A program made the position numbers and the translations under genes. Below are positions 34,953 to 63,439 of a stretch of DNA of 64,000 bases, piece by piece. Each line of letters opens with the position of its first letter. The stretch's first letter is position 1. A model generated the notes under the pieces. The model was not told the origin of the DNA and did no database searches. It saw nothing but the letters and a program-made list of their open reading frames with translations. Location: sequence record MW879341.1. One strand, written 5' to 3'.

Positions 34953-34990
34953 ACCCCCACGACCCAGGGCACTAGCCTTGGGTCTTTTAT
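34947..34990 (+). terminator. hairpin with a GCATAAA 5' arm
   Basis: GCATAAA...GACCCAGGGC-ACTA-GCCTTGGGTC-TTTTAT. Confidence 0.65.
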
Positions 34991-35004
34991 TAGGATTGAA
35001 AAGC

Positions 35005-35679
35005 ATGGTACTGGTAGAAATTCCAAAAGATAATAATAGCATTGAGGTAGACGATACTTTGATGGCTCGTTACGGTGACGCAGTCCGTTTCGTAATCGAG
35101 AACAATGATTCTAAGGGCGCATATCACACTACCCATCATCTGTTGGGTGTGGCAACCATTCTGTGCTCTATGTTCAATCGCCTCTCTCCTGACGCATTGA
35201 CGCAAGTACAACGTGATACTTTGGTCTATGCGGCGCTGTTCCACGATTTCGATCATCCCGGTACTGGCGATGACGTTCTGAACATCAAGACTACCATCGA
35301 TGCCCTGTATGCAAAAGATGCCTGGTCTGTCATTCCTAAAGAGTTATCACTCGATGTGTATAACGCCATCAATGAGACACTCTGGCCGGCCCCTGCTGAT
35401 TTAGTAATCAGTGATGTTAACTGGTATCTCCGTGACGCCGATCAACTCTACGCGACCGTTTACCTGACGCCTGAGTTAAGTCGTGAGTTGTTTAAAGAAC
35501 TCGGCCCTCGTTTTAATGTACCTACGTACAGCCAGTGGTTATTCCGTAACGTTGAGTACGTTATGTCACTGCCTGGTGCATTGCACTACGAGTGTGCGAA
35601 GTACGTCTACGACTGTCACTTACCGAAGTCATTGAAAATCCATTTCGCTGAATTGTATAAGCAAATCGATGGAGAGTAA
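35005..35679 (+). CDS. HD-domain phosphohydrolase with class I cyclic-nucleotide PDE-like motifs
   Basis: YHTTHH, LFHDFDHPG and RDAD motifs. Confidence 0.75.
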   Translation: MVLVEIPKDNNSIEVDDTLMARYGDAVRFVIENNDSKGAYHTTHHLLGVATILCSMFNRLSPDALTQVQRDTLVYAALFHDFDHPGTGDDVLNIKTTIDALYAKDAWSVIPKELSLDVYNAINETLWPAPADLVISDVNWYLRDADQLYATVYLTPELSRELFKELGPRFNVPTYSQWLFRNVEYVMSLPGALHYECAKYVYDCHLPKSLKIHFAELYKQIDGE

Positions 35680-38238: not shown

Positions 38239-39578
38239 ACCTCTTTCTATCCTGGTATCAGACTCTACTGGACTCAGCTAAACAATGGCCTGCCGCTCAA
38301 GCTGCCATCGTTACAACGAGTTCTGTAGCCGCCGCTGGTGCTGTGGGTTTCTTACTCTGGAAACTCCCGTCCCGCCTGATTCATTTCTTTAAGACCCAAT
38401 GTACCACAAAGCTGAGTTTCTCTACAGCATCGACATCGTGGTCAAGCTATAACAGCACGCAGTACATCGCGTTCTTACGTTGGTTCTCGAAGAACAGTTG
38501 GTTCAACTGGAGTCGTGTCATCACACTCGATGGTAATGATTCCAGTAACGGTGCAGTTGGTCCAGGTGTGGGCAATCACTTCTTCGTTTTTAAACGTAGA
38601 CTGTTTGTGTTCACCATCGCTGAAGATCAAGCCAACCAATCGGGTCAGGCAAAGTATCGTATTAGTATCACCACACTGGGACGTAGTAAAGGTCCTCTCT
38701 ATAAACTGATGTCTGAGTTTATGGAGAAAGATACCCACGGTGAGATGATTACGGTCTTTGAGAATAGTAAGTCCGATTGGAACTGGGTTGCTCAAACTCA
38801 CAAACGTGACCTCAGTACGGTTATCTATCCTCCGAACATTCAGGACGAACTGATCGACCCTATCTTAAAGTTCACTGAATCCCGTGACTGGTATCTGAAG
38901 CGTGGATTGAACTATAAGGTAGCCATCTTACTATATGGTCCTCCCGGTACGGGTAAGAGTTCTTTGGCGTTGGCGATTGCCAGCCTCTTAGGTCGCAACC
39001 TCTATATCTTGAAGCCTGACGGTAGCTGCTCTTACAACGCATTGTTCCAAGGGGCAAAGGGTGGTTTGGTGTTGATGGAAGATATCGACACCTATGGCAT
39101 CTCTCGTTCTCGCGACAACAACGGTACTGATGCCAAACTGGGTGTTGTTAAGTTGAAGGAGTCGAAGAAAGAAGAGGTTGAGGCTATACCGGTTGCTCCG
39201 GGCGGTGCGTCTACCCACGACTCGCTCTCTGAGTATATGTCAGGTAGTTTGTCCGAACTGTTAAATGGTTTAGACGGCGTGTTGGGGTTAGATGATGTAG
39301 TTGTGCTGATGACAGCTAACCACCCAGAGGTTTTAGACGAAGCACTGATTCGCGATGGTCGCGTAGACCTACGTGTTGAGGTTCCGTATCTGGGTAACGC
39401 TGAGATTCACCGCTATATCCAAATGATGTTCCCTAACGAGCCGTACGACGCTACACGCGTCTTTGGGTCATTACCGGGAGCAACTGTACAGAAACAATTT
39501 AAACTCAATACAACGAGTTTGAGTGGGTTTGTTAACGCACTGCATAAAGAAGTAGAGAAAAGGGAAAAGGTAGCATAG
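38232..39578 (+). CDS. BCS1-like membrane-anchored AAA+ ATPase
   Basis: N-terminal TM, BCS1_N-like GxGxHFF...ITTLGR, WYxxRG...LLYGPPGTGKSS, MEDID, LLNGLDG, TANHPExLDxALIRDGRVD. Confidence 0.85.
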   Translation: MLDLFLSWYQTLLDSAKQWPAAQAAIVTTSSVAAAGAVGFLLWKLPSRLIHFFKTQCTTKLSFSTASTSWSSYNSTQYIAFLRWFSKNSWFNWSRVITLDGNDSSNGAVGPGVGNHFFVFKRRLFVFTIAEDQANQSGQAKYRISITTLGRSKGPLYKLMSEFMEKDTHGEMITVFENSKSDWNWVAQTHKRDLSTVIYPPNIQDELIDPILKFTESRDWYLKRGLNYKVAILLYGPPGTGKSSLALAIASLLGRNLYILKPDGSCSYNALFQGAKGGLVLMEDIDTYGISRSRDNNGTDAKLGVVKLKESKKEEVEAIPVAPGGASTHDSLSEYMSGSLSELLNGLDGVLGLDDVVVLMTANHPEVLDEALIRDGRVDLRVEVPYLGNAEIHRYIQMMFPNEPYDATRVFGSLPGATVQKQFKLNTTSLSGFVNALHKEVEKREKVA

Positions 39579-41533: not shown

Positions 41534-42220
41534 ATGCGTCTTGTCGTGAAACAACCGCTGGAGCAATACCAGCGGGTTTACGGTCAGGACTACCGGCGTG
41601 TGTATATCGTGGGTGACATTCACGGACAGTTAACTAAACTACTGAAGCAGTTAGACTCGGTAGGTTTTGACTATGCTCAAGACTTGTTAATTTCCGTGGG
41701 TGACCTCATTGACCGTGGTCCAGAATCCAAAGAGATGTTGTCTTTGCTGGACGAGTCTTGGTTCATGTGCGTTCGTGGTAATCACGAAGACCTCGCCACC
41801 TCAGCCGTAGAGCAATTGGAAGATCACTCAGTTGCCTTGTGGTTGCAGAATGGCGGTACGTGGATACTGAAGACAGAGTTAGGTGAGGAACGTAATTGGT
41901 GTATCGCTCAATTGATGAAAACAGCTGACTTGCCGTTTGTCATTGAGTTGATTACCAAAGATCACCTAATCGTCATTGCACACGGTTGCTACCCTGAGCG
42001 TGAATACGAGTACGGGAAGAAGATAGACGGTTTCAAGGTGACTTGGGATCGCGACCTTTACCTTGCTCGACGCGCGGGTGACGAAAGACACACCTTCGGT
42101 GCAGATCTGTTCTTCCACGGACACAACCACGTCAAGGAAGCAGCAGTATACGGCAACCACCACTACATTGCGACAGGAGCATATGGTCCTGAACCATTTA
42201 CAATTGTGAGGGTACAATAA
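41534..42220 (+). CDS. calcineurin-like Ser/Thr protein phosphatase (lambda NinI/PphA type)
   Basis: GDIHG, GDLIDRG, RGNHE, NGGxW, HG and HGH motifs. Confidence 0.9.
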   Translation: MRLVVKQPLEQYQRVYGQDYRRVYIVGDIHGQLTKLLKQLDSVGFDYAQDLLISVGDLIDRGPESKEMLSLLDESWFMCVRGNHEDLATSAVEQLEDHSVALWLQNGGTWILKTELGEERNWCIAQLMKTADLPFVIELITKDHLIVIAHGCYPEREYEYGKKIDGFKVTWDRDLYLARRAGDERHTFGADLFFHGHNHVKEAAVYGNHHYIATGAYGPEPFTIVRVQ

Positions 42221-43988: not shown

Positions 43989-44235
43989 CTACAGTCACAT
44001 TGCAGGTGGTCTGTATATCGTACGCACACAGGCTGGCTTCATGTCAGCCATCCATCATCGTCTTGACGCACTACACCAATCGACAAGACCTACGGAATAC
44101 CACCACAACTACCCTAAGACATATCCGTCCCTGGTGAGTATCGACGTTGGTTATCGTGGTTACGACTGCCTTGAGATTTCTTGCGCGCATCTTAATGTCG
44201 TAAAAGAAGCAATCGAAAAGAGTGAGCAACAATGA
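43966..44235 (+). CDS. hypothetical protein
   Basis: 89 aa, YPKTYPSLV motif, overlaps the thyA start. Confidence 0.6.
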
Positions 44236-45086
44236 AACAGTATTTAGACTTAGTTCGCCGTGTAGTAAATGAAGGCGAGTGGGTAGAGAACCAGCGTACC
44301 GGTACGCGTTGCCTGACATTGATCGGTGCGACGATGGAATACGATGTTGGTAACAACGTGTTACCACTACCAACCACGCGTAAGGTTGCTTTCCGTCCTT
44401 TGGTTGCAGAACTCCTGGGTTACCTGCGTGGTCTGGATAATGCAGCAGAATTCCGTGCTCTGGGTTGTAAGACCTGGGACGCTAACGCCAATGAAAACGA
44501 AGCGTGGTTGGCTAACCCGCACCGTAAAGGTACAGACGACATGGGTCGTGTGTATGGCGTACAGGGTCGTCACTGGCGTAAACCGGACGGTAGTGAACTG
44601 GACCAACTCCAGAAGATCTACGATAACCTGAAAGCAGGTAAAGACGACCGTGGTGAAATCCTGACGTTCTGGAACCCGGGTGAGTTTGAGGAAGGTTGTC
44701 TGCGTCCGTGCATGCATACTCACCAATTCAGTCTGCTGAACGGCGTACTGTATCTGGACTCAATGCAAAGGAGTTCTGATATCCTGCTGGGGACGTGCTT
44801 TAACATGTCTCAGTGTTTTGTATTGCTGGCACTGATGGCACAGATCACTGGACACAAGCCGGGTAAGGTCAGTCATCGTAATGTGAACGTACACATCTAC
44901 GACAACCAGTACGAAGTGTTAATGGCTCAGGGTCAGTTGGATCGTGAACCTCGTCAGTCGCCTTCTCTCTGGATCAACCCAGCGATCAAAACGCTGGAAG
45001 ACGTGATGACGTGGGTGACTGTTGATGACTTCAAGGTTATCGGGTATGACCCACACGCACCAATCGTTTATCCATTCTCCGTATGA
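44232..45086 (+). CDS. thyA: thymidylate synthase
   Basis: RTGT, TWDANA, MGxVYGxQxR, catalytic RPCM, QRSSD, FN and HIYDNQ motifs. Confidence 0.95.
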
Positions 45087-51392: not shown

Positions 51393-51986
51393 ATGAACGA
51401 CCAGCAGAACAAAAAGAAAGGCATTAGCGGTTTAGTTATCGGCCTGATCATCATCCTCTCTTTGGTGGTGTTGTCCGTAGTGGGTGTGGTAACCGCTTAC
51501 GTCAGTGCTGCGAACTCAGGCGCGCGCATTGAAGCGAACATCGAGGCGTTGAACCAGGACAGTGAGAACGTGTTGTCTACTGTTACCACTAACATCAAAG
51601 AGCAAGCCGGTATCGTGGGCGTCTACTCCAAAGACTTCCAAGACTCGCTGGCTAAAGCGATGGGTGGGCGTTATGGTGCAGAAGGTAGTAAGGCTACCAT
51701 GCAATGGATTAAAGAGCAGAACCCTACTCTCGACTCCAGTCTGTATGCTAAAGTGCAGGACATCATTAACGGTGGGCGTAAAGAGTTCCAAATCTCACAG
51801 ACTCGTAAACTCGAAGTCTGCCGCGATTACAAAGCTCGCCTGAATTACGTTATCGGTGGGGCGTTCATGCGTATGGCTGGTTATCCTAAAACTGACCTGG
51901 CCAAAGAGTGTCGTGTCGTTTCAGACAGTGACTCTCGTGAAGCCTTTGACACTGGGCTGAACAAACCAGTATCTTTCAACCGTTAA
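51393..51986 (+). CDS. single-TM helical protein, LemA-like
   Basis: Basic N-terminus, TM, then helical body ending ...RDYKARL...FMRMAGYP. Confidence 0.55.
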   Translation: MNDQQNKKKGISGLVIGLIIILSLVVLSVVGVVTAYVSAANSGARIEANIEALNQDSENVLSTVTTNIKEQAGIVGVYSKDFQDSLAKAMGGRYGAEGSKATMQWIKEQNPTLDSSLYAKVQDIINGGRKEFQISQTRKLEVCRDYKARLNYVIGGAFMRMAGYPKTDLAKECRVVSDSDSREAFDTGLNKPVSFNR

Positions 51987-52480: not shown

Positions 52481-52507
52481 GGAGGACTTCGGTCCTCCCT
52501 TTTATGC
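52481..52507 (+). terminator. GGAGGAC-TTCG-GTCCTCC hairpin, copy 1
   Basis: Followed by CTTTTATGC; the same 18-mer occurs at 55185 and 62380. Confidence 0.75.
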
Positions 52508-52565
52508 AGTTTTAATTTACACCGTTTGTCTATCTATTGAATCGAAACACAACGGAGCATTATAA

Positions 52566-53441
52566 ATGAAAGTGAAGTTTGATGGTTGTTCAATTGAGTT
52601 GAAAACATTCGGATTCCCGGGTGGTGAGCGTCACGTTCGCCTGGAGAATCTGGACGACTACTTCAATGGCTGGGATCGCTTTCAAGATTCGGCGTCTATC
52701 GATCACGTAGAAGTGTTAATGGACTTCCGTGGTTCAGATGACATTGTAGACCTGATGTTGGTCACCGATGCTATCCGTCGTCTCCCGTTTGTTACTAAGA
52801 ACACAGTACACACGCTGGTCATGCCGTACATGCCGTTTGCACGTCAAGACCGCGCTGCTGAAGTCGGTGAACCGCACTCCGCAAAAGTCATGGGTACTGT
52901 ACTGAACCTGCTGGCGTATGACAACGTGGTTATTGGTGATGCGCATAGCGATGTCACTGGTGCTGTGGTTGACAACGTGCAGTTGGTATCTCAGGCCAAA
53001 CTCGTCAACCGTCATCTCGGTGGTGAGATTGTAGCAGGTGGTTGGGTACTGTGTGCTCCCGATACTGGCGCTACTAAGAAAGTAGACCAACTGGCGCAAC
53101 TGCTGAAAGTGGTTGATGTCGTACAAGGTGTCAAACACCGCGATACTTTAACCGGTAAACTCACTGGCTTCGATTGCTATGGTGACGTGTCTGGTAAGAA
53201 GGTCATGATCGTTGATGACATCTGTGACGGTGGTGGTACCTTCCTGGGTCTGGCACAGGTCCTGCGTGACAAAGGTGCTGTCAGTGTAGGACTGTTCGTT
53301 ACACACGGCATTTTCTCCAAAGGGTTGGAAGTGTTCGATGGGTTAATCGATCATCTCTACACTGTTAACGTGTGGTCTAACAATGCGGTAGCTACCCCTA
53401 CCAACAATCTGACAGTTTTCAAAGATAAGGATTTTAACTAA
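52566..53441 (+). CDS. prs: ribose-phosphate pyrophosphokinase-like protein (candidate NARP1 ADPR-PP synthetase)
   Basis: FPGGE, MPYMPFARQDR, DAHS, APDxGA, IVDDICDGGGTF. Confidence 0.9.
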   Translation: MKVKFDGCSIELKTFGFPGGERHVRLENLDDYFNGWDRFQDSASIDHVEVLMDFRGSDDIVDLMLVTDAIRRLPFVTKNTVHTLVMPYMPFARQDRAAEVGEPHSAKVMGTVLNLLAYDNVVIGDAHSDVTGAVVDNVQLVSQAKLVNRHLGGEIVAGGWVLCAPDTGATKKVDQLAQLLKVVDVVQGVKHRDTLTGKLTGFDCYGDVSGKKVMIVDDICDGGGTFLGLAQVLRDKGAVSVGLFVTHGIFSKGLEVFDGLIDHLYTVNVWSNNAVATPTNNLTVFKDKDFN

Positions 53442-55171
53442 TGCAGAACCTCGACCCGAAATACTTCACTGAAGACCCACTGGTATTCCTGCTGTGTGAC
53501 GCCTACAAAACTGGCCACATCAATCAACAGCCGGTTGGTACTCAGAGTTTCTTTGAAAACCTGACCGCACGTAGCCACACGTACTTCAACACCCCGCTGG
53601 ACTTTGACGGTTCTGTATTCTTCGGTATGCAGCGTCTGCTTCTGCGTTGGTTGGTTGGTAGCTTCTCGAACTTCTTTAGCAAGCCGTTTGATGAGTCTGA
53701 AGCCGAGTACCTTCAGTACATGGATGGTGTGCTGGGTAAAGGTGTGGTTAAAGCCGATCACCTGCGTGCACTGCACGAACTGGGTTACCTGCCACTGGAA
53801 ATCCGTGCTGTTCCTGAAGGTTCACTGGTACCTATTCGTGTGCCATTCCTGACCATCGAAAATACCGTTGACGGTTTTGGCTGGCTGACAGGTTACTTCG
53901 AAGACCTGTGGAGCAACGAACTGTGGAAGCCGTGTGTACTGGCAACCAAAGCACTGCACTTCCGCCGTGTACTGGAACAGTACGCTGCTGAGACGGGTGC
54001 AAGCCAGGGCTTCATTGACTATCAGTCACACAACTTCGCACTGCGCGGTATGTCTGGTATGTTCGACGATGCTAACAGTTCTATGGGTCAGCTGCTGTAC
54101 TTCAAAGGTAGTGATAGCTTCCCATCTATCTGGTCAATGAACCGTTACTACAACCTGGACAAAAGCGTCACCATCGGCGAGATCGCTAACTCCGTTCCTG
54201 CGACAGAGCACAGCGTTACCTGTCTGAACATTGCTGTCTATGCGAAACAACTGCGTGCCACTAAAGAGTACGCACTGGCCAGCGAAGACGTTGTACTGTC
54301 TAAGGCAGAAGAGATGTTCATGGCTCACCTGTTAGGTGTAGTGTATCCGTCAGGCGTGTTCAGTTTCGTATCTGACACCAATGACTTCTGGGACACCATC
54401 CGTAACAAAGCGGTGGCAAACAAAGCACTGATCATGGAACGCGATGGCAAAACTGTCTTCCGTCCTGACTCTGGTAACCCAACCCGTATCCTGGCCGGTT
54501 ATCGTTGGGATGGCGTACACTACGCTACCCGCTACGAAGCAGAGCAGAACGCTGACCTGATTCCTTACGAAGCTATCTACATCCACGATAAGTGCTATCG
54601 TATTGTAGAAGGTGAAGTGATTCCAGAGATCGACTACGAGCAACCGCTGGAGCTGCACGAAGTGAAAGGCGCGGTAGAGTGTCTGTGGGAGATCTTTGGT
54701 GGTGTGGTTAACGGAGCTGGCTTCCGTGAAGTCGATTCACACGTTGGCCTGATCTACGGTGATGCTATTACCCTGGTTCGCATGACCGATATCCTGAAAC
54801 GTCTGAAAGAGAAAGGTTATTGCAGCTCTAACGTCGTATTCGGTGTGGGTAGCTTCGAGTTCCAGTTCGTGACTCGTGACACCCTGGGCATCGCTATGAA
54901 AGCCACTGCCGGTAAAGTCAACGATGAGCACTACTCTATCGCTAAGAATCCGAAGACCGATGACGGTACGAAGAAGTCTGCGAAAGGGTACCTGCTGGTG
55001 ACCTATGGTGAGAACGGCAAGCTGGAACTGGTTGATAACCTGACCCGCGATCAGTACGAAGCCATGCGTGGTAGTGACATCGATGCAATGCGTACCGTTT
55101 ATAAAGACGGTAACGTGCTGGTCTTTGAAAATGTCAAGTCTATTCGTGAGCGCGCTGCTCAGTGGATCTAA
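53441..55171 (+). CDS. nadV: nicotinamide phosphoribosyltransferase-like protein (candidate NARP1 nicotinamide ADPR-transferase)
   Basis: DAYKxGH, PLEIRAVPEG, HNFALRG, SVPATEHS, RPDSG, GLIYGDAIT, FGVGS, FVTRDT, KxSAKG. Confidence 0.9.
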   Translation: MQNLDPKYFTEDPLVFLLCDAYKTGHINQQPVGTQSFFENLTARSHTYFNTPLDFDGSVFFGMQRLLLRWLVGSFSNFFSKPFDESEAEYLQYMDGVLGKGVVKADHLRALHELGYLPLEIRAVPEGSLVPIRVPFLTIENTVDGFGWLTGYFEDLWSNELWKPCVLATKALHFRRVLEQYAAETGASQGFIDYQSHNFALRGMSGMFDDANSSMGQLLYFKGSDSFPSIWSMNRYYNLDKSVTIGEIANSVPATEHSVTCLNIAVYAKQLRATKEYALASEDVVLSKAEEMFMAHLLGVVYPSGVFSFVSDTNDFWDTIRNKAVANKALIMERDGKTVFRPDSGNPTRILAGYRWDGVHYATRYEAEQNADLIPYEAIYIHDKCYRIVEGEVIPEIDYEQPLELHEVKGAVECLWEIFGGVVNGAGFREVDSHVGLIYGDAITLVRMTDILKRLKEKGYCSSNVVFGVGSFEFQFVTRDTLGIAMKATAGKVNDEHYSIAKNPKTDDGTKKSAKGYLLVTYGENGKLELVDNLTRDQYEAMRGSDIDAMRTVYKDGNVLVFENVKSIRERAAQWI

Positions 55172-55174
55172 CGG

Positions 55175-55210
55175 CATAAAACGAGGAGGACTTCGGTCCT
55201 CCTCTTATGC
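55175..55210 (+). terminator. GGAGGAC-TTCG-GTCCTCC hairpin, copy 2, with GCATAA/TTATGC arms
   Basis: GCATAAAACGAGGAGGACTTCGGTCCTCCTCTTATGC. Confidence 0.75.
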
Positions 55211-55229
55211 GGCTAATAAGGAATGTAGT

Positions 55230-55610
55230 ATGTCTGCACTCGATAAACTTAAAGTCTGGGTTGATGCTAATCCAGCAGCCCCGGACTGGTTCCAAAGAGA
55301 GTTCCCTGACGATATAAAGGATGAGTTGTCAGCAGAGTACCTCAAAGATCCAGAAGGCTTTAAAACGGCAATTAAGGATCATTACCAGTGGACTTATAAA
55401 GAGGCCAAGGATAACGACGACGATAAATACGGATTTATCCTTATTATCTGCACGCACCATGGTGAGGTTACAGCTTACGCCGATAAAGAAGTATTTAAGT
55501 CCATGGGTGAAAGCGTTAGCTTGTTCACTAAACTGAACGCAACGTGGTATGGTCGACTTTGGTTGAAGATCACCTTTACTATCTATAACTGGAGAAACGG
55601 TAACAAATGA
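55230..55610 (+). CDS. hypothetical protein with a C-terminal hydrophobic segment
   Basis: ORF 55068..55610; AAGGA RBS gives ATG 55230. Confidence 0.7.
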   Translation: MSALDKLKVWVDANPAAPDWFQREFPDDIKDELSAEYLKDPEGFKTAIKDHYQWTYKEAKDNDDDKYGFILIICTHHGEVTAYADKEVFKSMGESVSLFTKLNATWYGRLWLKITFTIYNWRNGNK

Positions 55611-56011
55611 AACTTAAAGAACTACGCCCAGAAGTATTCGGACTTTACTTAGATCAACCTCTGGTATTGGACGCTATGATCTCGTCGGCGATCCTGTTAA
55701 ACGAACGTGAGTTACTGTATCCGTTAATGGGTGACCTGGCGGCGCATGAAACATTCAATCAAGTGGATGGTGACGTTGATCGTTATGCCTACTGGTTTGG
55801 TGTCGGTGGTCATGTCAAAACCATGATGCCAGACCTACCACCGCCGTTAGACCGTAACGTGAACCCCATCGCACAGTACGAACCTGAAACTGTTAGCGAT
55901 ATCCTCCGCTATATCGAAGGTACTGCAACCAAGATGGGTAACGATACCAAAGCACTGCGTGAAGCTACCACACGCTTCTTTAAACTGTTTGGGAGCGCTG
56001 GGTTACAGTAG
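55607..56011 (+). CDS. hypothetical protein
   Basis: 134 aa, ATGA overlap. Confidence 0.7.
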   Translation: MKLKELRPEVFGLYLDQPLVLDAMISSAILLNERELLYPLMGDLAAHETFNQVDGDVDRYAYWFGVGGHVKTMMPDLPPPLDRNVNPIAQYEPETVSDILRYIEGTATKMGNDTKALREATTRFFKLFGSAGLQ

Positions 56012-56018
56012 ATCATCT

Positions 56019-56462
56019 ATGGTATCTATTAGACAACTGTCCGGACCGAGTGAGATGGGGTTGGTTTTACCGGCTCTATTAACTCTGGACCAGTACTATC
56101 CTAACATCGGCGATTGGTTTGAACGTAAGGTCCTCTCAGACTCCACAGGAAGCTCTGTAGCGATCGGTGCGTTTGAATCCGACACGTTGGTTGGGTTTGT
56201 TTTAGGTAAGCGTGGTGACGAGTCTAAGCTCCGCTGTGTGCGTGTAGCTGAATCTCATCAAAACTCGGGATTGGGTTTGAAATTGTTAGAACGCGGTATG
56301 GATTTGCTGGAATGCGAACAACCGCTGGTTACAGTATCCGAAGAACTGCTAGGACAGTACAGTAGGATATTCGTTAACCGTTACGGGTACTCACTCGACC
56401 AAGTAGTTAAAGGGGCTTACCGTCGTGGTAAGTTAGAATACGTATTTAATGGGGCACTCTAA
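56019..56462 (+). CDS. GNAT-family acetyltransferase
   Basis: KLRCVRVAESHQNSGLGLKL (acetyl-CoA motif A); likely start ATG 56019. Confidence 0.8.
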   Translation: MVSIRQLSGPSEMGLVLPALLTLDQYYPNIGDWFERKVLSDSTGSSVAIGAFESDTLVGFVLGKRGDESKLRCVRVAESHQNSGLGLKLLERGMDLLECEQPLVTVSEELLGQYSRIFVNRYGYSLDQVVKGAYRRGKLEYVFNGAL

Positions 56463-56975
56463 ATGTCACACAGTTTTGTAGCACTGAATAACGCAACTGA
56501 TGGCACAACTGTCGCGGTTGCAGAAAACAAGAGCGGTGATAGTGAGTGGTACGGGAGACCTTTACGTCTTCTCATTATCCAGGCACCGACTAACGACATC
56601 GAAACACATGTCAACGGTATTCTCGAACGTGGGGAGCAGTACCTTATCGGTTGTTCGTACACTGAGACTTATCGTCTCACTGCTCTGGTTGTACAGGAAG
56701 ATCGCACTGAGTTCGTCACTGTCCGACACGGTGTGGTGGCGATCGAGGACTCTCCTGAACATATGCTGGACATCAGTGATCTAACGACGACTATCGTTAC
56801 ACCGATGCTTATGGAAAGGCAGAGTAATTCACTGGTTGGTAAACTGACTAACCATATCGTATTAGGTTTGATGTCTGGCGTTACACCTGGCGATCTGTTT
56901 GATCGTTTCACACCAGCGGCACCTAAAAGCAAGAACGTCTTCATTCGCCTTTGGAGGGCTGTGTTCCATGACTAA
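56463..56975 (+). CDS. hypothetical protein
   Basis: 170 aa, abutting the GNAT gene. Confidence 0.7.
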   Translation: MSHSFVALNNATDGTTVAVAENKSGDSEWYGRPLRLLIIQAPTNDIETHVNGILERGEQYLIGCSYTETYRLTALVVQEDRTEFVTVRHGVVAIEDSPEHMLDISDLTTTIVTPMLMERQSNSLVGKLTNHIVLGLMSGVTPGDLFDRFTPAAPKSKNVFIRLWRAVFHD

Positions 56976-57363
56976 CGAAACCCGTGTTGAGTTAACTGCA
57001 CCTGCCGGCACCAACGTTGAACCACTTCGCGTAGGAAAAGGTGTGGGTGAGATTGGTGACACTACTGGCCCAACACACAGCTTCAGTGTAGTAGATGACC
57101 GTAATAAATCCCGTGACGACCTGCCGGTGATTGTTACTATCTTCGGAAACGGTCGACGTTATCCGTTGGAGCGGATGTTCATTGAGAAAGTGGTTCGTGA
57201 GTTTGATGACGACTCTGTAGCTGAATCTTTTGAAACCACGCTGCTCTATCTTGCGGAACGTTACGAGATTAGCGGTAAGATTCTGGTCTTGCTGTCTAAC
57301 CCGCCAGTCACTAAGAAAGGTAAACCTGTTAGGAGGTTACGTGGGACAAAAAAGACTCGATAA
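56968..57363 (+). CDS. hypothetical protein
   Basis: ORF 56899..57363; GGAGG RBS gives ATG 56968. Confidence 0.65.
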   Translation: MTNETRVELTAPAGTNVEPLRVGKGVGEIGDTTGPTHSFSVVDDRNKSRDDLPVIVTIFGNGRRYPLERMFIEKVVREFDDDSVAESFETTLLYLAERYEISGKILVLLSNPPVTKKGKPVRRLRGTKKTR

Positions 57364-57553
57364 GAAACGTGCGGATAAACGCATCCCGATGAGGTTCCGT
57401 GGTAGACGGAAATACATCGAACTCGTTAGACAGACATACCTGGTCAACGTTGTTGCTGAGTTGACAGACGCCAGTCGTCCGGTGGATTGGGAAAGTATTA
57501 TCTCACCGCCAGTACTGTTCGCTCCAGCGGGACCACACCACCACCCCTACTGA
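57341..57553 (+). CDS. small basic hypothetical protein
   Basis: AGGAGG RBS before GTG 57341. Confidence 0.55.
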   Translation: MGQKRLDKKRADKRIPMRFRGRRKYIELVRQTYLVNVVAELTDASRPVDWESIISPPVLFAPAGPHHHPY

Positions 57554-57609
57554 CATACTGACGGCCCTACTCTGGGTAATTGTGTGGATAAACTACAGGA
57601 GTAATAATC

Positions 57610-58122
57610 GTGAGTTTAATGTTTCATCAACTCTACCCAGAGATTCGTGACCTGATGGTTGAAGAGATCGAGAATGACATACGTCGTCGAGGTCTCTACT
57701 ACAGTCGTCGTCTTTCTGCTAACGGGTTTAATCTTTGGCCTGACGTGTTGTTAGACGCTGCTTATGGTGGTGATGACGAAACCCTTACCCAAACACTACT
57801 GGACAGACAAATGCTGATCACAACCGGCACTGCTGTTGATGGTAGAGTATTGGGACACGGGTACGCTCAGACACTCGCAGAAGGGGAATTTAATCGCTAC
57901 TACATTCGCGGCATTTGTGCTGCTGCTGTGGAAGGCGATATTCCCTTTGTCACTGTGTATCGTGCTAAACGTGCGTGGGCACCACGACCAGAGTCTGACG
58001 CTATGTTAGGGAGTCGCATTGACTCTCTTTCATTATTAAACGATCTGCGCAATAACGTAGGGCGGGAAACGCAATACGGTATACCCAATGGTCCAAACAG
58101 TGGTTTAACTGTGGAATACTAA
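57610..58122 (+). CDS. conserved hypothetical protein of a family recalled from bacteria
   Basis: LYYSRRL, LAEGEFNRYYIRG, VYRAK, GPNSGL motifs; AGGAG RBS. Confidence 0.75.
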   Translation: MSLMFHQLYPEIRDLMVEEIENDIRRRGLYYSRRLSANGFNLWPDVLLDAAYGGDDETLTQTLLDRQMLITTGTAVDGRVLGHGYAQTLAEGEFNRYYIRGICAAAVEGDIPFVTVYRAKRAWAPRPESDAMLGSRIDSLSLLNDLRNNVGRETQYGIPNGPNSGLTVEY

Positions 58123-58123
58123 A

Positions 58124-58639
58124 ATGTTACTCACTACTGATGACTATGTCTTCTTCTATTATGGGGACGACGTTTACAGTAACTTCTATCGTCAGAAGTT
58201 TGAAATGGCAGGACAAACGTTCTTCTGTTCCGAACAGGCGATGATGTACTGTAAGGCTATGTTCTTCCGTGATTACGCGACGGCTGCTAAAATCATGGCA
58301 GTCAATCCCGATACACGTCGTGCACCCTTCGACTGTAAGATGTTAGGTCGTGAGGTTACGCCGTACAATGACGAGCAGTGGGCGTCTGTTCGGTACGATG
58401 TGATGTGTAAGATCGTGTTGGCTAAATTCAGTTCTACAGATGAAATGCGTTGGCATCTCGTCAGGACTGGAAACCGTGTGTTGGTAGAAGCAAGCCCTAC
58501 TGATGTTATCTGGGGCGTTGGTATGGACGTAGATCACCCAGACATCCTAGACTCAACCTGTTGGCGCGGATTGAACCTTTTAGGTAATGCGTTAATGTGG
58601 GCTAGAGACCGTCTGGTTGACGAAAAGCGACTACCTTAG
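58124..58639 (+). CDS. NADAR (YbiA-like) family hydrolase
   Basis: SNFY, SEQAMMYxKA, KxLGR, LVEASPxDxxWGxG, GxNLLGxALM. Confidence 0.92.
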   Translation: MLLTTDDYVFFYYGDDVYSNFYRQKFEMAGQTFFCSEQAMMYCKAMFFRDYATAAKIMAVNPDTRRAPFDCKMLGREVTPYNDEQWASVRYDVMCKIVLAKFSSTDEMRWHLVRTGNRVLVEASPTDVIWGVGMDVDHPDILDSTCWRGLNLLGNALMWARDRLVDEKRLP

Positions 58640-58650
58640 TGCTTTAGTCC

Positions 58651-58687
58651 GTTTCATTAAATTTTCAGATATATACTACCTTTGTGA
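58651..58687 (+). promoter_or_regulatory. early-promoter-like conserved motif
   Basis: GTTTCATTAAATTTTCAGATATATACTACCTTTGTGA, 35/37 identical to 1128..1164. Confidence 0.7.
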
Positions 58688-58732
58688 TTTAAGTAAGATA
58701 ATCCAATCAATTAACTCATTAAGGAAGTCACT

Positions 58733-58945
58733 ATGTCTACTACTAACAACGAAAACACCGCTGCAAACGAAGCTAAAGCAACTGCTAAAAGCTGGATGGC
58801 TAACCCATGGGTCAAATGGGGTCTGGTAGCCACAGCAGTGGTGGTAGTCACCGCAGTCGCTGTACCACTCATCCGTAAAGTGAGTGAGCCTCTGGCAGAC
58901 GAGATCGTAGAGATCGCCAAAGAGCACAGCGAACCAGAAGCATAA
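58733..58945 (+). CDS. 70-aa single-TM protein with an acidic tail
   Basis: WVKWGLVATAVVVVTAVAVPLIRK; AAGGA RBS. Confidence 0.75.
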   Translation: MSTTNNENTAANEAKATAKSWMANPWVKWGLVATAVVVVTAVAVPLIRKVSEPLADEIVEIAKEHSEPEA

Positions 58946-58986
58946 GTGAAGTAAAGGTGGGAGTAGAACTCCCACCTGTTATGCCC
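58940..58986 (+). terminator. hairpin with GCATAA/TTATGC arms
   Basis: GCATAA...AGGTGGGAG-TAGAA-CTCCCACCT-GTTATGC. Confidence 0.65.
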
Positions 58987-59033
58987 GTAGTACAAAAACA
59001 CATTCAATCATTTTACTATTAAGGAATACCATT

Positions 59034-59561
59034 ATGTCAAACATTACTCTGAAACTGATCACTGCAAACATCAACATCGCTGTAAACGGTAATGCTGGTT
59101 CCATCAGTGTCCTTGACGCTAACGGTAACGTTACCAGTGCTGTACCGATCATCAACCATCGCCCATACGACCAAGATCGTAAAGCGCTGGTGCGTGCTCT
59201 GTATGTACAGTCCTTCAACAGTGAGTTGGTGTTAGACGATGCAGATCGTGAACTGTATCGTAAGCTGGCTCTGAAGTTAGCTTCTGAAGTTAAAGACGCT
59301 GACAACGATTTCTACGTTGGTGAGTACTGCGAAGTTCGTGAAAACAATAACGGCATTATCGGCTGGGTTGACGTTAGTCGTCAGGGTGATAAAGTCGTTA
59401 GCATTGGTGTTGGCATGGAACTGGGTACAGACTCATGGACTCATCACTACGATGTGTCTAACGGTCCAGTACCTTTCAACGCACCACTGTATACCGATAG
59501 CGAGTTCTTATCGTTCATGGGTAAAGTGACTAACTACGCAATCGCTAACCAGATGTTTTAA
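59034..59561 (+). CDS. hypothetical protein
   Basis: 175 aa, AAGGA RBS. Confidence 0.75.
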   Translation: MSNITLKLITANINIAVNGNAGSISVLDANGNVTSAVPIINHRPYDQDRKALVRALYVQSFNSELVLDDADRELYRKLALKLASEVKDADNDFYVGEYCEVRENNNGIIGWVDVSRQGDKVVSIGVGMELGTDSWTHHYDVSNGPVPFNAPLYTDSEFLSFMGKVTNYAIANQMF

Positions 59562-59564
59562 TAT

Positions 59565-59606
59565 GACGGGACCTTCGGGTCCCGTTGTCCCCATGTTTCT
59601 TTTTTG
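59565..59606 (+). terminator. UUCG hairpin terminator
   Basis: GACGGGACC-TTCG-GGTCCCGTT, T-run downstream. Confidence 0.65.
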
Positions 59607-59658
59607 TAAAAAACTACAGGATGCCCCAATCTAATGTCTATCACTAAGGAGTACGAGA

Positions 59659-60018
59659 ATGAGCACAGAACTGTTAGTCGTCAGTACTATTACAGCATAC
59701 CACCTCCGCCCTGAGAATGTGGCCAAATGGCTAAAGGCTGAGTGTCTGGTCAACCATCCAGCAAACAGTTTGATTGATGCAGTTACCTGGTCGTCAAACG
59801 AACGCACGCAGGTCGTTCACTGTGAGGTCATTCTGAAGAACGGTCACATCTTGACCGCTGTCTCTCGTCCAATCGATCCAAAAGACTACCTGTTACAAAC
59901 CGGTCTGTCTGCATCATTCCGTAACGCTCGTGATGAGTTCTTTAAATATGCGGCCTTCATGGCCAAAGAGACCAACAACCCTCACTATTTAAAAGATCTC
60001 CCTAAAAACGCTGAGTAG
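59659..60018 (+). CDS. Gp49-like (Phage_gp49_66-type) protein, candidate nucleotide-signal sponge
   Basis: HCEVILKNGHILTAVSRPIDPKDY...G...A..NA matches the CxxxLxNGxxxxGxSxxxDPxxF...G...A..NA pattern. Confidence 0.6.
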   Translation: MSTELLVVSTITAYHLRPENVAKWLKAECLVNHPANSLIDAVTWSSNERTQVVHCEVILKNGHILTAVSRPIDPKDYLLQTGLSASFRNARDEFFKYAAFMAKETNNPHYLKDLPKNAE

Positions 60019-60023
60019 CAATT

Positions 60024-62027
60024 ATGATTCGTGATTACTACGACGAACTACAAAATCGTCTAAAGGGTTACAACACTCTTTACCATAACGGTGAATCTAC
60101 CGTCAGTGATGCCACGTATGACTCGTTAATGCGTACGTTGATCTCACTGGAAGCAGAGCACCCGGAATGGGTAACGCCGGAGAGCATGACGCAACTTGTG
60201 TCTGTTCGTGAAGCAGGTGATGACAAAATCCCACATATGTCCAAGATGTATAGTCTGGATAATATCTTCGATGAGGCAGAGCTAGTTAAGTGGTTGGCTT
60301 CTAAGAAGGGTGTGTTGACGCCTAATGCTCTCTGTACGTTAGAGTGGAAGATGGATGGGTTAGCCATTAACTTGATCTATCGCAACGGTGTTCTGGAAAC
60401 AGCGAGCACTCGTGGGGACGGTGAGGTAGGAAAGGACGTTACTCGCAATGCTGGTAATGTCATTGGTATTCCGTTGAAACTCAATATGGATAAACCGCCT
60501 GAGTTGTTAGAAGTACGTGGTGAGGTGTACATGCCTCGCCCTATCTTTGAAGCACTCAGAGAGAAAGCATTCCAACCTGGTATGGCTGGGATGTTCTTCA
60601 CCAACCCTCGTAATGCAGCGGCTGGCAGTCTGAGACTGAAAGATCCAGCAGCGGTGTTAGAACGTGGACTCGTCTTCAATGCCTACGGTGTGGGTACAGG
60701 ACGTGAAAATGTTCCAGCTAACTTCCAACACGAGATCTACTATTGGCTGAACCAGGTAGGTTTTGCAGTGTCGGCAGGGGTGGTGACAGTACCACTCAAA
60801 CTTGAAAGCATCATGCAACAGTATAACTCGCTGATTGCTGAGCGTGATCGCTTAGAGTTAGAAATTGATGGTATGGTTATCAAGGTATCTAACCTGAGGG
60901 CTCAAGACGACTTGGGCTTTACAAGTCGGGCACCTAAGTGGGCCATTGCCTTCAAGTTCCCAGCCGAAGAACGTGAAACCGTCATGCAGCACATTGACTA
61001 TCAGGTTGGTCGAACTGGTGTGATAACACCGGTAGCCGTCTTCGAACCTGTATCGTTGTCTGGTGCTATGGTCAGTGCAGCCACACTTCACAATGAGGAG
61101 CACATTCGTAAACTGGATCTGTGGTGGGGCGACACTGTTGTAGTAAGACGCAGTGGTGACGTAATCCCGCAGATACTGTACGCAATACCATCCTTCCGTC
61201 AACCAGATGCTAAACCGTTTGTGTTCCCCACTGAGTGTCCTGAGTGTGGTAACAAGTTGGTGAAGGTTGAAGGTGAAGCCGCTGTTCGTTGTCCAGCTAC
61301 AACTACGTGTCATGCTCAAGTGTTGGCAGGATTAGAACACTTCGTATCTCGTGGTGGCATGAGTATCGACGGTCTGGCCTATGCTACCCTCGCCACACTG
61401 ACTGACTGTGAGTTAGTAAAAGGTGTTGAGGATATCTATAAGCTCACGAAAGAGCAAATGGTTAGTGTAGCAGGACTGGGTGATAAGGTAGCGGATAACT
61501 TGGTTCGTTCTATTGAGCGCTCTAAGGCTGTACCGTTGGCGAAGTTTATCTATGCACTGGGTATTCCAGGTGTGGGTGAAGGAACCTCACTGCGCTTAGC
61601 AAAAGTGTACGATGACGTATTTACACTGATGCAGGCCAGTAGCGACGACTTAGCTAAAATACCAGACATCGGTGAGATGACTGCTGATGCTATATCAGAC
61701 TGGTCTCTCGTAGAGGGTAATGTGTCAATGATCCACGAACTTATTGGTTCTGGTATCCGACCCATCCCGCTTCCTAAACCGACTGTCACGGTTGGACCGT
61801 TTGTAGGTAAGGCTGTATGTATCACTGGTAGTTTCGCGGGTTACAAACGCGACGAACTGAAAGAGATCATCCGTATGTTGGGTGGTAAAGCGGTAAGTAG
61901 CGTGTCGGCTAAAACTGACTTGCTGATTGCTGGTGAAAATGCTGGCACTAAGCGTGAAGACGCTGAACGCCTGAAGATTGAAATCATTGACGAAGCGGAA
62001 TTTGTCCGTCGTCTCGAAGCCAAATAA
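60024..62027 (+). CDS. ligA: NAD+-dependent DNA ligase
   Basis: YH...VSDxxYD, KMYSLDN, EWKMDG, EVRGE, NPRNAAAGSL, Cys4 zinc finger, HhH repeats, BRCT (CITGSF). Confidence 0.96.
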   Translation: MIRDYYDELQNRLKGYNTLYHNGESTVSDATYDSLMRTLISLEAEHPEWVTPESMTQLVSVREAGDDKIPHMSKMYSLDNIFDEAELVKWLASKKGVLTPNALCTLEWKMDGLAINLIYRNGVLETASTRGDGEVGKDVTRNAGNVIGIPLKLNMDKPPELLEVRGEVYMPRPIFEALREKAFQPGMAGMFFTNPRNAAAGSLRLKDPAAVLERGLVFNAYGVGTGRENVPANFQHEIYYWLNQVGFAVSAGVVTVPLKLESIMQQYNSLIAERDRLELEIDGMVIKVSNLRAQDDLGFTSRAPKWAIAFKFPAEERETVMQHIDYQVGRTGVITPVAVFEPVSLSGAMVSAATLHNEEHIRKLDLWWGDTVVVRRSGDVIPQILYAIPSFRQPDAKPFVFPTECPECGNKLVKVEGEAAVRCPATTTCHAQVLAGLEHFVSRGGMSIDGLAYATLATLTDCELVKGVEDIYKLTKEQMVSVAGLGDKVADNLVRSIERSKAVPLAKFIYALGIPGVGEGTSLRLAKVYDDVFTLMQASSDDLAKIPDIGEMTADAISDWSLVEGNVSMIHELIGSGIRPIPLPKPTVTVGPFVGKAVCITGSFAGYKRDELKEIIRMLGGKAVSSVSAKTDLLIAGENAGTKREDAERLKIEIIDEAEFVRRLEAK

Positions 62028-62038
62028 AGGAAAACGTA

Positions 62039-62365
62039 ATGAAAATCTCTATCAAAGAAACTCTGAAATCTCTGCTGCTGAAAGAAGGTCAGGAATCTGG
62101 CGTTGACTTCGCAGGTACCACTGTCGAAACCACCGTTACCGAAATCAAAGCAGGTGTGGCTTCCCTGTCTGGTATCGACGGCGTGACTGTGCCGGGTAAA
62201 GTGAGCTACTCAGACGGCGAATCTCCACTGACCGTGGGCGACGTACTGAAGATCCAACTGGACACTGGTCTGGTTGCTGAGCGCACTGTGGTTAAAGCGC
62301 CAACTGACCGCAAACGTAACGGCACCGGTAGCCCAGACTACAGCATGAAATCTCAGGGTATCTAA
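62039..62365 (+). CDS. hypothetical beta-rich protein
   Basis: 108 aa, AAGGA RBS. Confidence 0.7.
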   Translation: MKISIKETLKSLLLKEGQESGVDFAGTTVETTVTEIKAGVASLSGIDGVTVPGKVSYSDGESPLTVGDVLKIQLDTGLVAERTVVKAPTDRKRNGTGSPDYSMKSQGI

Positions 62366-62379
62366 ACCCAAAACCTTCA

Positions 62380-62405
62380 GGAGGACTTCGGTCCTCCTTT
62401 TATGA
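62380..62405 (+). terminator. GGAGGAC-TTCG-GTCCTCC hairpin, copy 3
   Basis: Followed by TTTTATG. Confidence 0.75.
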
Positions 62406-62425
62406 CGTCTTTAAGGAATTGAGCT

Positions 62426-62923
62426 ATGACAACGATTGTGTATCGTGATGGTGTACTGGCAGCAGACTGTCAGATGTTGGTAGCTGGGGACAGCGCTAAC
62501 CGTTACTACTTCAAGGGCACTAAGATCTACCGCCCCGCTTGTAAAACGCTCGTGTATGCTTCCACGGGTATGAACTATGATGCCACTACGCAGGCACTGT
62601 TAACCAACGCGCTGAAGATGGGTATTGCCGAATTAGCCGCCGACGGAATCACCCCACGCGTACGTAAACTGATTTATGAACTGTTTACCAAAGAGACCAT
62701 TGTCTGTACCAAGACAAAGGTTTACCACATTCGCAAAGGCGATATGGTTGAACTGTCCCCTGAGATTCCGTGGTTAACTGTAGGGTCCGGTACGTGCTTC
62801 TCAGGACTGGCCTTACAGAAAGGTTTAAACGCTAAAGCCTCCGTTGAGTTCGCAAACAAAATGGACGTACTCTCTGGCTTCGGTGTAGAAACTGTACTTT
62901 TAAATAAACTGCGTAAATCATAA
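62426..62923 (+). CDS. Ntn-hydrolase, HslV/proteasome beta-like peptidase
   Basis: N-terminal MTT nucleophile, GVLAAD, GSG motif, C-terminal AxxxD..SG. Confidence 0.75.
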   Translation: MTTIVYRDGVLAADCQMLVAGDSANRYYFKGTKIYRPACKTLVYASTGMNYDATTQALLTNALKMGIAELAADGITPRVRKLIYELFTKETIVCTKTKVYHIRKGDMVELSPEIPWLTVGSGTCFSGLALQKGLNAKASVEFANKMDVLSGFGVETVLLNKLRKS

Positions 62924-62935
62924 GGACTAACAGCT

Positions 62936-63439
62936 ATGTCAAACTTCTATCTGTTTAAAGGTAACAAGATCGCCATCACAATGGGCGGTTGTCGTTCCAA
63001 TGGTCTGTTTGCTCCAACTAACATCGAAAATCTGATTACCGCGCACGGTTTATTAATCCCGGTGTCTTCTAGCTTTATGAACGTATTGGACATGTTGGAA
63101 GACACAACCCCCGCTCCTGCCCGTGCTGTAGACAGTTGGTGCTGTAGCATCCTCGACTATGAAGGCGTGCTGCGTGACTTTTACGTCGATTCAAGTGACG
63201 GGGAGTCCACCATTAAATACGAGCGTCAGATGACAGGTCCTGGTTGTACCGGTGCGCGTTCACGCTGGTTAGAGGTAGAGGAGCGTGCTATGGCCTCATT
63301 GGCTCTCTGTGAGACTGTGGAAGAAGCGCTGGACCTGATCGTGCAACATAACGGCTACAAGCGTGAGTGGTATAAGATCTTCGAAATTCCTGAACTGTTG
63401 AAAATGATGGGAGCTAGCAAAGGTGAAAGTCGAACATAA
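62936..63439 (+). CDS. hypothetical protein, possibly an inactive Ntn-fold partner
   Basis: Same size as the upstream gene, similar strand and late-helix pattern (TVEEALDL), no N-terminal Thr. Confidence 0.5.
   Translation: MSNFYLFKGNKIAITMGGCRSNGLFAPTNIENLITAHGLLIPVSSSFMNVLDMLEDTTPAPARAVDSWCCSILDYEGVLRDFYVDSSDGESTIKYERQMTGPGCTGARSRWLEVEERAMASLALCETVEEALDLIVQHNGYKREWYKIFEIPELLKMMGASKGESRT

Follow-up and report, generated by a model that had tools for sequence, protein, structure and literature searches.

The DNA analysed here is a stretch of 64,000 nucleotides (nt) from sequence record MW879341.1, called the window below, and our subject is the group of genes that it carries at positions 52481-63439. 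These include the two genes of the NAD+-rebuilding system NARP1, a GNAT acetyltransferase gene, an ADP-ribosyl glycohydrolase gene of the NADAR family, a gene related to the Acb4 nucleotide sponges, the gene of an NAD+-dependent DNA ligase (LigA) and a gene related to HslV peptidases. A first-pass annotation had joined them into a single circuit. We think it probable that the interval holds independent modules, set in a long same-strand accessory array, and not one pathway.

The interval corresponds, with 100% identity, to positions 176481-187439 of MW879341.1 (a window coordinate is the record coordinate minus 124,000). The record, of 272,635 bp, is that of Erwinia phage pEa_SNUABM_54, whose host is Erwinia amylovora and which is filed as an unclassified member of the Caudoviricetes; all of its coding sequences were deposited under the name 'hypothetical protein'. 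The open reading frame starts used in the first-pass annotation agree with the GenBank gene calls of the record. Eight or nine small genes of the interval lack any family match in Pfam, PHROG and NCBIfam. All genes and hairpins described for the interval lie on the plus strand. What each gene is, where the units end and which relatives have or lack a gene is read below from the sequences, and the biochemical activities of all genes of the interval are given as predictions. The comparisons rely on three close relatives (L013, L014 and L018, about 80-86% identical in nucleotide sequence and collinear over 20 kb), which come solely from metagenome or read-archive assemblies, and on two more distant ones, L021 and L022, whose core proteins are 50-70% identical to those of pEa_SNUABM_54.

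The NARP1 genes and the NADAR

The interval opens with two adjoining genes, the stop of the first overlapping the start of the second by 1 nt. The first (52566-53441, 291 amino acids) encodes an Adps-like protein of the Prs family, the putative ADP-ribose pyrophosphokinase that is the first NARP1 enzyme. It carries the Pfam Prs domains and matches TIGR01251 (1.5e-35) at profile positions 60-253 of 309, that is, in the central part only, which fits a divergent C-terminus; the top matches in a PDB search were Prs enzymes (3e-20). The second gene (53441-55171, 576 amino acids), with NAMPT-family matches, encodes the predicted nicotinamide ADP-ribose transferase Namat, the second NARP1 enzyme. Its top solved relatives are 9W5X and 9W5W (386 bits, 2e-114), which according to the structure paper are SpbetaL1 Namat, whereas the classical NAMPTs scored only about 135 bits (4e-38) in the same database. 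Alignment to these two structures shows that the catalytic His257 is retained and that Arg341 is the equivalent of R306. Aromatic residues at both clamp-helix positions, which distinguish Namat from NAMPT, are likewise present, as Phe472 for F392 and Phe476 for Y396. The protein differs from SpbetaL1 Namat by two insertions, at residues 264-293 and 354-408, which explain its extra length, and the activity of this copy is a predicted one.

By homology, Adps would pyrophosphorylate ADP-ribose and Namat would join the product to nicotinamide, so that NAD+ would be rebuilt after NADase defences have cut it. The reading of this Prs-like and NAMPT-like pair as NARP1, already made in the first-pass annotation, stands: the genes adjoin and overlap as in known NARP1 systems, and the second has the score, the catalytic His and Arg and the clamp aromatics of a Namat. 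The system is correctly called and is already catalogued. Indeed, both genes figure in the supplementary tables of Osterman et al. ('Phages reconstitute NAD+ to counter bacterial immunity'), where MW879341_00189 is entered as an Adps homologue associated with Namat and MW879341_00190 as a Namat that is 'Adps-associated'.

The NADAR gene (58124-58639) lies further to the right. Its product matches PF08719 (1.5e-40) and the YbiA-type model TIGR02464 (2.3e-41), which it clears with 141.6 bits against a cut-off of 73.7. Only two PDB entries were matched, the Phytophthora NADAR 8BAU (1.4e-22) and then E. coli YbiA 2B3W (6e-7), and alignment to both shows that the family Glu of the last strand is retained, Glu in place of Asp or His being a mark of the YbiA family. 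The passed model, the PDB matches and this Glu together place the protein outside the gp30.3/AdfN and DarG1-like clades. It thus resembles AdfN and the other phage NADARs, described as orphan DarG1-like antitoxins, in standing alone and in keeping the family catalytic Glu, but differs from them in being of the YbiA/stand-alone type (TIGR02464, 8BAU), not gp30.3-like or DarG1-like. The nearest phage homologues, 47% identical, are found in unrelated 355-kb phages.

What is this NADAR likely to do? Four bacterial or phage NADAR subtypes, YbiA included, have been assayed in vitro, and all removed ADP-ribose from guanine. Several unrelated phage NADARs counter DarTG1, although whether cells are protected depends on which NADAR it is; in one study E. 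coli YbiA and T4 gp30.3 did not save cells from the toxicity of DarT1. By analogy with these enzymes, the most likely task of the pEa_SNUABM_54 protein is to strip ADP-ribose from guanine in the phage's DNA and so to counter toxins of the DarT1 type, and the NADAR of the first-pass annotation is both real and a plausible DNA de-ADP-ribosylase. Phages that form a nucleus are known to depend on an enzyme that removes ADP-ribose from DNA; this enzyme, AdfM, is however a macrodomain protein with DarT2 marks as its targets, whereas the protein discussed here is a NADAR.

The same genes could be read as housekeeping genes, in which case the NAMPT-like/Prs-like pair and the NADAR would serve the NAD+ and riboflavin-type metabolism of a large phage that has an NAD+-dependent ligase. 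The NCBIfam names point this way (ribose-phosphate diphosphokinase, nicotinate phosphoribosyltransferase and 'riboflavin biosynthesis intermediates N-glycosidase'), as do published reports that Namat makes nicotinamide mononucleotide from phosphoribosyl pyrophosphate in vitro and that YbiA-type NADARs are linked to riboflavin metabolism. However, the second protein of the pair groups with Namat and not with NAMPT, by its score and by its clamp aromatics, and an Adps-clade gene beside Namat is the defining signature of NARP1, under which pEa_SNUABM_54 has been listed; the table of Osterman et al. says 'Adps-associated' and records no Nmnat partner. The NADAR, for its part, has the Phytophthora NADAR as its top solved relative, and the activity on guanine extended to YbiA itself. 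We consider a housekeeping role of these genes very unlikely.

Small genes, the Acb4-like gene and the right end of the interval

Between NARP1 and the NADAR lies a run of mostly small genes. A patchily distributed gene (55230-55610, 126 amino acids) has no match in Pfam, PHROG or NCBIfam; its homologues in L021 and L022 are 40-43% identical, it is missing from L013 and L014, and the short L018 contig gave no match. The next gene (55607-56011, 134 amino acids) has no family match either; it is 77-87% identical in the three close relatives and missing from L021. It is followed by the GNAT gene (56019-56462), also missing from L021, whose product was rightly named at the outset (PF00583, 1.6e-5; phrog_13728 'acetyltransferase', 1.9e-37). 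Three overlapping small genes without family match come next (56463-56975, 56968-57363 and 57341-57553), 72-82% identical in the close relatives and again missing from L021. To the right of the NADAR, a GenBank call of 70 amino acids (58733-58945) has sub-threshold Pfam matches only and is 50-76% identical in L013 and L014, and a gene of 175 amino acids without family match (59034-59561) is 70% identical in L013, 25% identical in L021 and missing from L014.

The gene that directly precedes the NADAR (57610-58122) stops 1 nt before the NADAR start. It encodes a conserved protein of 170 amino acids (phrog_30545, 8e-30) belonging to a large unannotated family met with on phages (jumbo phages included), prophages, transposon-like and other mobile elements, with at least 1,716 clustered homologues of about 175 amino acids, none of which has a Pfam domain, and with 15 invariant residues, many of them charged or polar. 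Its AlphaFold (AF2) model is of high confidence, with a predicted local distance difference test score (pLDDT) of 90.4 and a predicted template-modelling score (pTM) of 0.88. A fold search of the PDB with this model nevertheless gave no match (best E 0.15, template-modelling score (TM) 0.22), and a sequence-profile search of the PDB with the family gave nothing. Against predicted viral structures (BFVD) the model had weak matches, mostly to minor capsid or head-morphogenesis proteins of the MuF type (best E 1e-3, TM 0.59), and we take this modelled resemblance as a lead only.

The surroundings of this family were of particular interest, as the first-pass annotation had described an unknown gene coupled to a NADAR. 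The gene is indeed conserved and immediately adjacent to the NADAR gene, but the NADAR neighbour is found only in the lineage of pEa_SNUABM_54. No homologue was found in the deposited phages searched besides pEa_SNUABM_54, and two IMG/VR loci with homologues have no NADAR neighbour. The bacterial homologues are stand-alone genes on mobile elements, with neighbours such as a prophage capsid gene; an integrase fragment and a GNAT gene; an element with HNH, repressor, recombinase and ParA genes; an IS1595 transposase and a SocA gene; and a resolvase. None of the bacterial loci examined has a NADAR beside the family member, so the coupling is a trait of the pEa_SNUABM_54 lineage and not of the family.

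The Acb4-like gene (59659-60018, 119 amino acids) encodes a divergent homologue of the PF13876 nucleotide sponges, and between its end and LigA there are 5 nt. The Pfam family PF13876 ('Gp49/gene 66') is that of Acb4; its founder, SPO1 Acb4, is a tetramer that sequesters 3'3'-cGAMP and related signals of the cyclic oligonucleotide-based antiphage signalling system (CBASS). The match of the protein itself to PF13876 (E 5e-4, 20.9 bits) stays below the Pfam cut-off of 27; its L021 homologue reaches 24.2 bits (5e-5). A profile made from the protein and a few relatives found Acb4 (9E4W) in the PDB at 1.4e-5 over 80 residues. The AlphaFold (AF2) monomer model (pLDDT 84.3) has an extra N-terminal strand, and its top 13 Foldseek matches in the PDB are all chains of 9E4W, with probabilities of 0.99-1.00 and TM scores of 0.61-0.74. 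What had been annotated as a Gp49-like gene is then, by profile and by fold, a member of a known sponge family. The same evidence ruled out Tad2 as its identity, a candidate that we had considered.

The pocket of this protein is another matter. SPO1 Acb4 contacts its ligand through K36, F48, E49, V56, Y57, F62, N63, I66, T70 and K81, and when these positions were mapped by hand from the alignment only about two of the ten were kept, K81 (as Lys96) and F62 (as Tyr77). The protein therefore resembles SPO1 Acb4 in its fold, in its similar size and in its place among other anti-defence genes, but differs from it in its sub-threshold Pfam match, its added strand and its contacts; homologues are few, six among 1.8 billion representatives. 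On the model, it has the Acb4 fold, with a changed pocket. The first-pass annotation had supposed a sponge that blocks the signal upstream of NAD+ depletion. This part was not borne out, as the signals that Acb4 proteins act on are CBASS cyclic dinucleotides and do not include the Thoeris one, which comes before NAD+ depletion; most of the contacts even for the former are lost in the present copy.

The ligase gene (60024-62027) encodes a LigA with the full domain set (PF01653, 2.3e-74, together with OB, Zn finger, HhH and BRCT domains), as had been annotated. The match to the N-terminal Nlig-Ia domain is weak (1.3e-3), which is not the case in L013 and L014. The nearest phage relatives of this ligase, 43-45% identical, belong to the Moabite/Totoro group. 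The 108-amino-acid gene that follows (62039-62365) has no family match and is the last of the Acb4-like/LigA unit; it is 86-94% identical in L013 and L014 and 37% identical in L021.

The last two genes of the interval had been described as a pair of Ntn proteases, and half of this description survives. The product of the first (62426-62923) is a homologue of the HslV-family, Ntn-type peptidases (phrog_1040 'peptidase HslV family', 8.5e-13), in which a Thr follows the initiator Met directly and Lys33 is invariant in the HslV-like alignment; for the homologue of Serratia phage Moabite, the depositors based their annotation on an HslV structure matched by HHpred, and the name 'ATP-dependent protease subunit' is given to it by one source. 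Counting against the peptidase identity, the protein has no Pfam match and no PDB match by sequence profile, and a large protein search with the alignment returned few homologues, none with a Pfam domain. The second gene (62936-63439) matches phrog_8172, of unknown function (1.4e-10), and shows neither a protease signature nor similarity to 62426-62923. It is a conserved partner of the HslV-like gene: its product is 26% identical to Moabite gp098, whose gene likewise follows Moabite's HslV-like gene.

Hairpins, relatives and the fate of the circuit

An 18-nt hairpin, GGAGGACTTCGGTCCTCC, occurs in three exact copies in the 64-kb window (52481, 55185 and 62380), all of them inside the interval, for a chance expectation of 0.04. 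The first copy (52481-52498; -13.9 kcal/mol, z -3.6) is terminator-like: its loop is UUCG, and a T-run and TATGC come after the stem. It forms the left border of NARP1 and is conserved in L013, L014 and L018. The second (55183-55204; -17.9 kcal/mol, z -4.2), with a 9-bp stem and the UUCG loop, forms the right border, directly after Namat, and its stem variants in L013 and L018 preserve the pairing. The third (62379-62398), recognised as the 18-nt repeat and by its fold, stands ahead of the HslV-like unit. Two further hairpins complete the set within the interval: one at 58956-58976 (-17.8 kcal/mol, z -5.1), with an 8-bp stem and a loop other than UUCG, followed by TGTTATGCC, and one at 59566-59585 (-17.8 kcal/mol, z -3.1), with the UUCG loop and a weaker T-tail. 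Another of the same design, with a GC-rich stem, a T-run and TATGC, lies just past the window (L001:19339-19356).

The design is thus a GC stem, a T-run and TATGC, with the UUCG loop in five of the six copies (58956 being the exception), and the hairpins are found at matching places in relatives. Judging from the sequence, they probably mark the borders of transcription units. The units so delimited would be Adps-Namat; 55230-58945, with the GNAT, the 57610-58122 gene and the NADAR; 59034-59561 on its own; the Acb4-like gene, LigA and the 62039 gene; and the HslV-like gene onward. The TATG after the hairpins may resemble the short promoter motif that phiKZ's own polymerase is reported to use. 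A scan for sigma-70 promoters gave 8 sites, against 16.5 in shuffled sequences, which says nothing useful about a phage that has polymerases of its own, and no Rfam family and no tRNA was found within 50-64 kb.

The close relatives are so near to pEa_SNUABM_54 that their conserved gene order says little. Even among these phages, which are about 80-85% identical, the small genes turn over. Genes of 218 and 105 amino acids are present in relatives only (L013:5622-6278 and L013:8134-8451), the former in both L013 and L014; between the 57610-58122 homologue and the NADAR, L013 carries one gene more; and the 55230-55610 and 59034-59561 genes are missing from one or both of L013 and L014. The first-pass view of a region rich in counter-defence genes holds good, with the addition that its small genes come and go between close relatives.

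More distant phages are more informative. In L021 the order is 57610-like gene, small gene, NADAR, 59034-like gene, small gene, Acb4-like gene, LigA, 62039-like gene and HslV-like gene, and at this locus there is no Adps, Namat or GNAT, nor any homologue of the 55607, 56463, 56968 and 57341 genes. The Klebsiella phage FBKp24, compared over its whole genome, has just two of the 17 interval genes, Adps (37% identical) and Namat (72%), adjoining and placed beside a dihydrofolate reductase gene, the median identity of its phiKZ-like core genes being 34%; with only NARP1 common to the region and such a core, it was ruled out as a close synteny relative. In Moabite the HslV-like pair lies 4 kb upstream of LigA, and within 10 kb of them there is no NARP1 and no NADAR. 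The genes are thus scattered beyond the genus level, which the first-pass annotation had itself named as counting against its circuit.

Namat looks exchanged, because its 72% identity to the protein of Maaswegvirus (the FBKp24 group) stands far above the core-gene median and above the 37% of the neighbouring Adps. Its identity to FBKp24 is 5.4 standard deviations above that of the core genes, and no Adps relative above about 40% identity was found among deposited phages. From these values, the comparison suggests that either Namat alone was exchanged recently or there is a recombination joint where adps and namat meet. Read from gene content, the interval is a mosaic, with an older backbone made of the 57610-58122 gene, the NADAR, the Acb4-like gene, LigA and the HslV-like gene, which a hairpin-flanked NARP1 cassette and some of the small genes appear to have joined more recently. 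FBKp24 also has NadR and PnuC genes (L007:300-2366) and two macro-domain proteins (L004:6891-7337 and L006:32173-32646), far from its NARP1 operon; its NAD+/ADP-ribose genes are scattered too.

These observations bear directly on the circuit that had been proposed, in which the NADAR frees ADP-ribose, NARP1 makes NAD+ from it, NAD+ feeds the ligase and the sponge blocks the upstream signal. All of the named parts do lie on one strand within 11 kb, and LigA consumes NAD+. The idea also shares its logic with NARP1-AP and RyDEP, the precedents for an accessory enzyme supplying ADP-ribose to NARP1: in the former the Macro-domain phosphatase Adpp is encoded inside the NARP1 operon, and RyDEP is a glycosidase fuelling NARP1. 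However, neither a Macro-domain nor a RyR-domain gene turned up in the interval. NARP1, with a hairpin on either side, forms a unit of its own; the NADAR, nine genes further along and separated from it by a hairpin, belongs to the next, and this linkage is not conserved. Indeed, the L021 locus carries the NADAR, the Acb4-like gene and LigA but no NARP1, FBKp24 has NARP1 without NADAR, Acb4-like gene or LigA, and the linkage is equally lost in Moabite. The published census of NARP1 operons names a Macro-domain phosphatase among the commonest accessory genes and makes no mention of NADAR. ADP-ribose released from DNA lesions would moreover be a stoichiometrically trivial feed for NAD+ synthesis, and the known Acb4 ligands are CBASS dinucleotides, not Thoeris signals. 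Given these split units, the lost linkage and the wrong ligands, we regard a single NAD+/ADP-ribose circuit as extremely improbable.

Probable independent modules in an accessory array

We favour independent modules, four in number. The first would be the two-gene NARP1 operon between two identical hairpins, a lineage-specific and horizontally exchanged addition; the second, the run of small genes with the GNAT, the 57610-58122 protein and the YbiA-type NADAR; the third, a divergent Acb4-type sponge co-transcribed with a replicative NAD+-dependent ligase; and the fourth would begin with the HslV-like peptidase and its partner gene. In a phiKZ-like, PhuZ-encoding Erwinia jumbo phage such modules would adjoin because phages collect accessory genes in arrays. 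The families concerned are common in large phages: NadV is found in 33% and LigA in 32% of jumbo phages, and NADAR in 48% when medium-sized phages are counted along with jumbo phages. The recognisable parts all come from described families, and no new pathway is revealed.

Several points weigh against this reading. Four independent modules would fall within 9.5 kb of each other with a probability of about 2e-4 if the whole 272-kb genome is taken as the reference. The hairpins may not terminate the phage's own RNA polymerases, and enzymes that feed ADP-ribose to NARP1, namely Adpp and RyDEP, do exist elsewhere. Finally, the neighbourhoods of the 57610-like gene with the NADAR and of the Acb4-like gene with LigA persist down to about 35-60% protein identity, and this persistence could mean function and not inherited order. 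As to the first point, the probability rises to about 0.065 when the clustering is assessed within the same-strand accessory array of about 37 kb. The clustering is real, but as expected of accessory arrays.

The last point raises the possibility of a partial coupling, in which the 57610-like protein works with the NADAR, or the Acb4-like protein binds a nucleotide tied to the ligase or to a ligase-targeting defence, or both. In its favour, both neighbourhoods are kept in L013, L014 and L021, and the first also in L022; the Acb4-like gene and LigA, almost contiguous, share one hairpin-bounded unit; and the ligand pocket departs from that of SPO1 Acb4 at about eight of the ten contacts. These relatives, however, all belong to one collinear lineage, whose linkage may be inherited gene order, and a separate gene stands between the 57610-like gene and the NADAR in L013, L021 and L022. 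The bacterial and IMG/VR loci of the 57610 family, where examined, never had the member beside a NADAR, and no PF13876 gene was detectable upstream of Moabite LigA. We judge such a coupling distinctly unlikely and keep to independent modules.

It is rather doubtful, though worth entertaining, that one or more new counter-defence factors are hidden in the array. First among the candidates would be the 57610-58122 protein, perhaps a new enzyme or a new inhibitor directed at a defence based on ADP-ribose or at some other defence. The Acb4-like protein would come second; its altered pocket may suit a nucleotide signal of another kind.

The edges of the interval are not natural limits. A terminator-like hairpin begins at its first base, 52481, and counter-defence genes also lie outside the interval, as we found with an anti-defence scan of about 30 upstream genes of the window and five genes past the window end. 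At 33603-34952, 19 kb upstream of the interval, a protein of 449 amino acids matches Tad3 over its first 160 residues (PF25185, 7.2e-20). Tad3 binds and blocks ThsB, the signal synthase of type I Thoeris, and because of this Tad3-like gene the likeliest blocker of a Thoeris signal sits 19 kb upstream of the interval and not in it. The gene directly after (34978-35679) encodes an HD/cyclic-nucleotide-phosphodiesterase-like protein (about 3e-6), and the two form, by these matches, a possible second anti-signalling pair. On the other side, a gene for a homologue of the anti-CBASS phosphodiesterase Acb1 (PF23474, 4.6e-14, above the cut-off) lies at record positions 191128-191595 (L001:20648-21115), 3.7 kb past the interval and about 3 kb past the window end; a thymidine kinase gene follows it, and the Acb1 gene is conserved in L013 and L014. 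The arrangement recalls known anti-defence clusters such as the Acb4 region of SPO1, where unrelated counter-defence families lie among small genes with turnover between relatives, but differs from them in that the cluster of pEa_SNUABM_54 is interleaved with backbone genes, LigA and the HslV-like gene with its partner.

Other genes of the window encode a calcineurin-like phosphoesterase (41534-42220), a thymidylate synthase (44232-45086) and a BCS1-type AAA ATPase (38232-39578), and the gene just left of the interval (51393-51986) matches a 'virion structural protein' PHROG. Among the genes of the window are also phiKZ-like ones for sheath, terminase and helicase, and a PhuZ-like tubulin gene (22958-23968; PF22334) whose product is 31% identical to the PhuZ of FBKp24. 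Directly downstream of the tubulin gene, 24017-26434 encodes 805 amino acids with an N-terminal nucleoside 2-deoxyribosyltransferase-like domain (PF15891, 1e-8), the remainder being without match. Membership of pEa_SNUABM_54 in the Chimalliviridae, which the first-pass annotation had assumed, is plausible. A tblastn search of MW879341 with two queries, the chimallins of FBKp24 and Moabite, gave no match, these two being 35% identical to each other.

In conclusion, a record in which every gene was 'hypothetical' gains NARP1, a YbiA-type NADAR, a divergent Acb4-family protein, Acb1, a Tad3-like protein, LigA and an HslV-like peptidase as annotations. Three leads are worth keeping: the large unannotated family of the 57610-58122 protein, whose modelled fold has no PDB match, the pocket changes in the Acb4-like protein, and the repeated hairpin-plus-TATGC element. 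The NARP1 block has the appearance of a hairpin-flanked cassette that moves between jumbo-phage lineages, and a fire-blight phage of the phiKZ-like group would stack counter-defence families against NAD+-depleting, ADP-ribosylating and cyclic-nucleotide defences.

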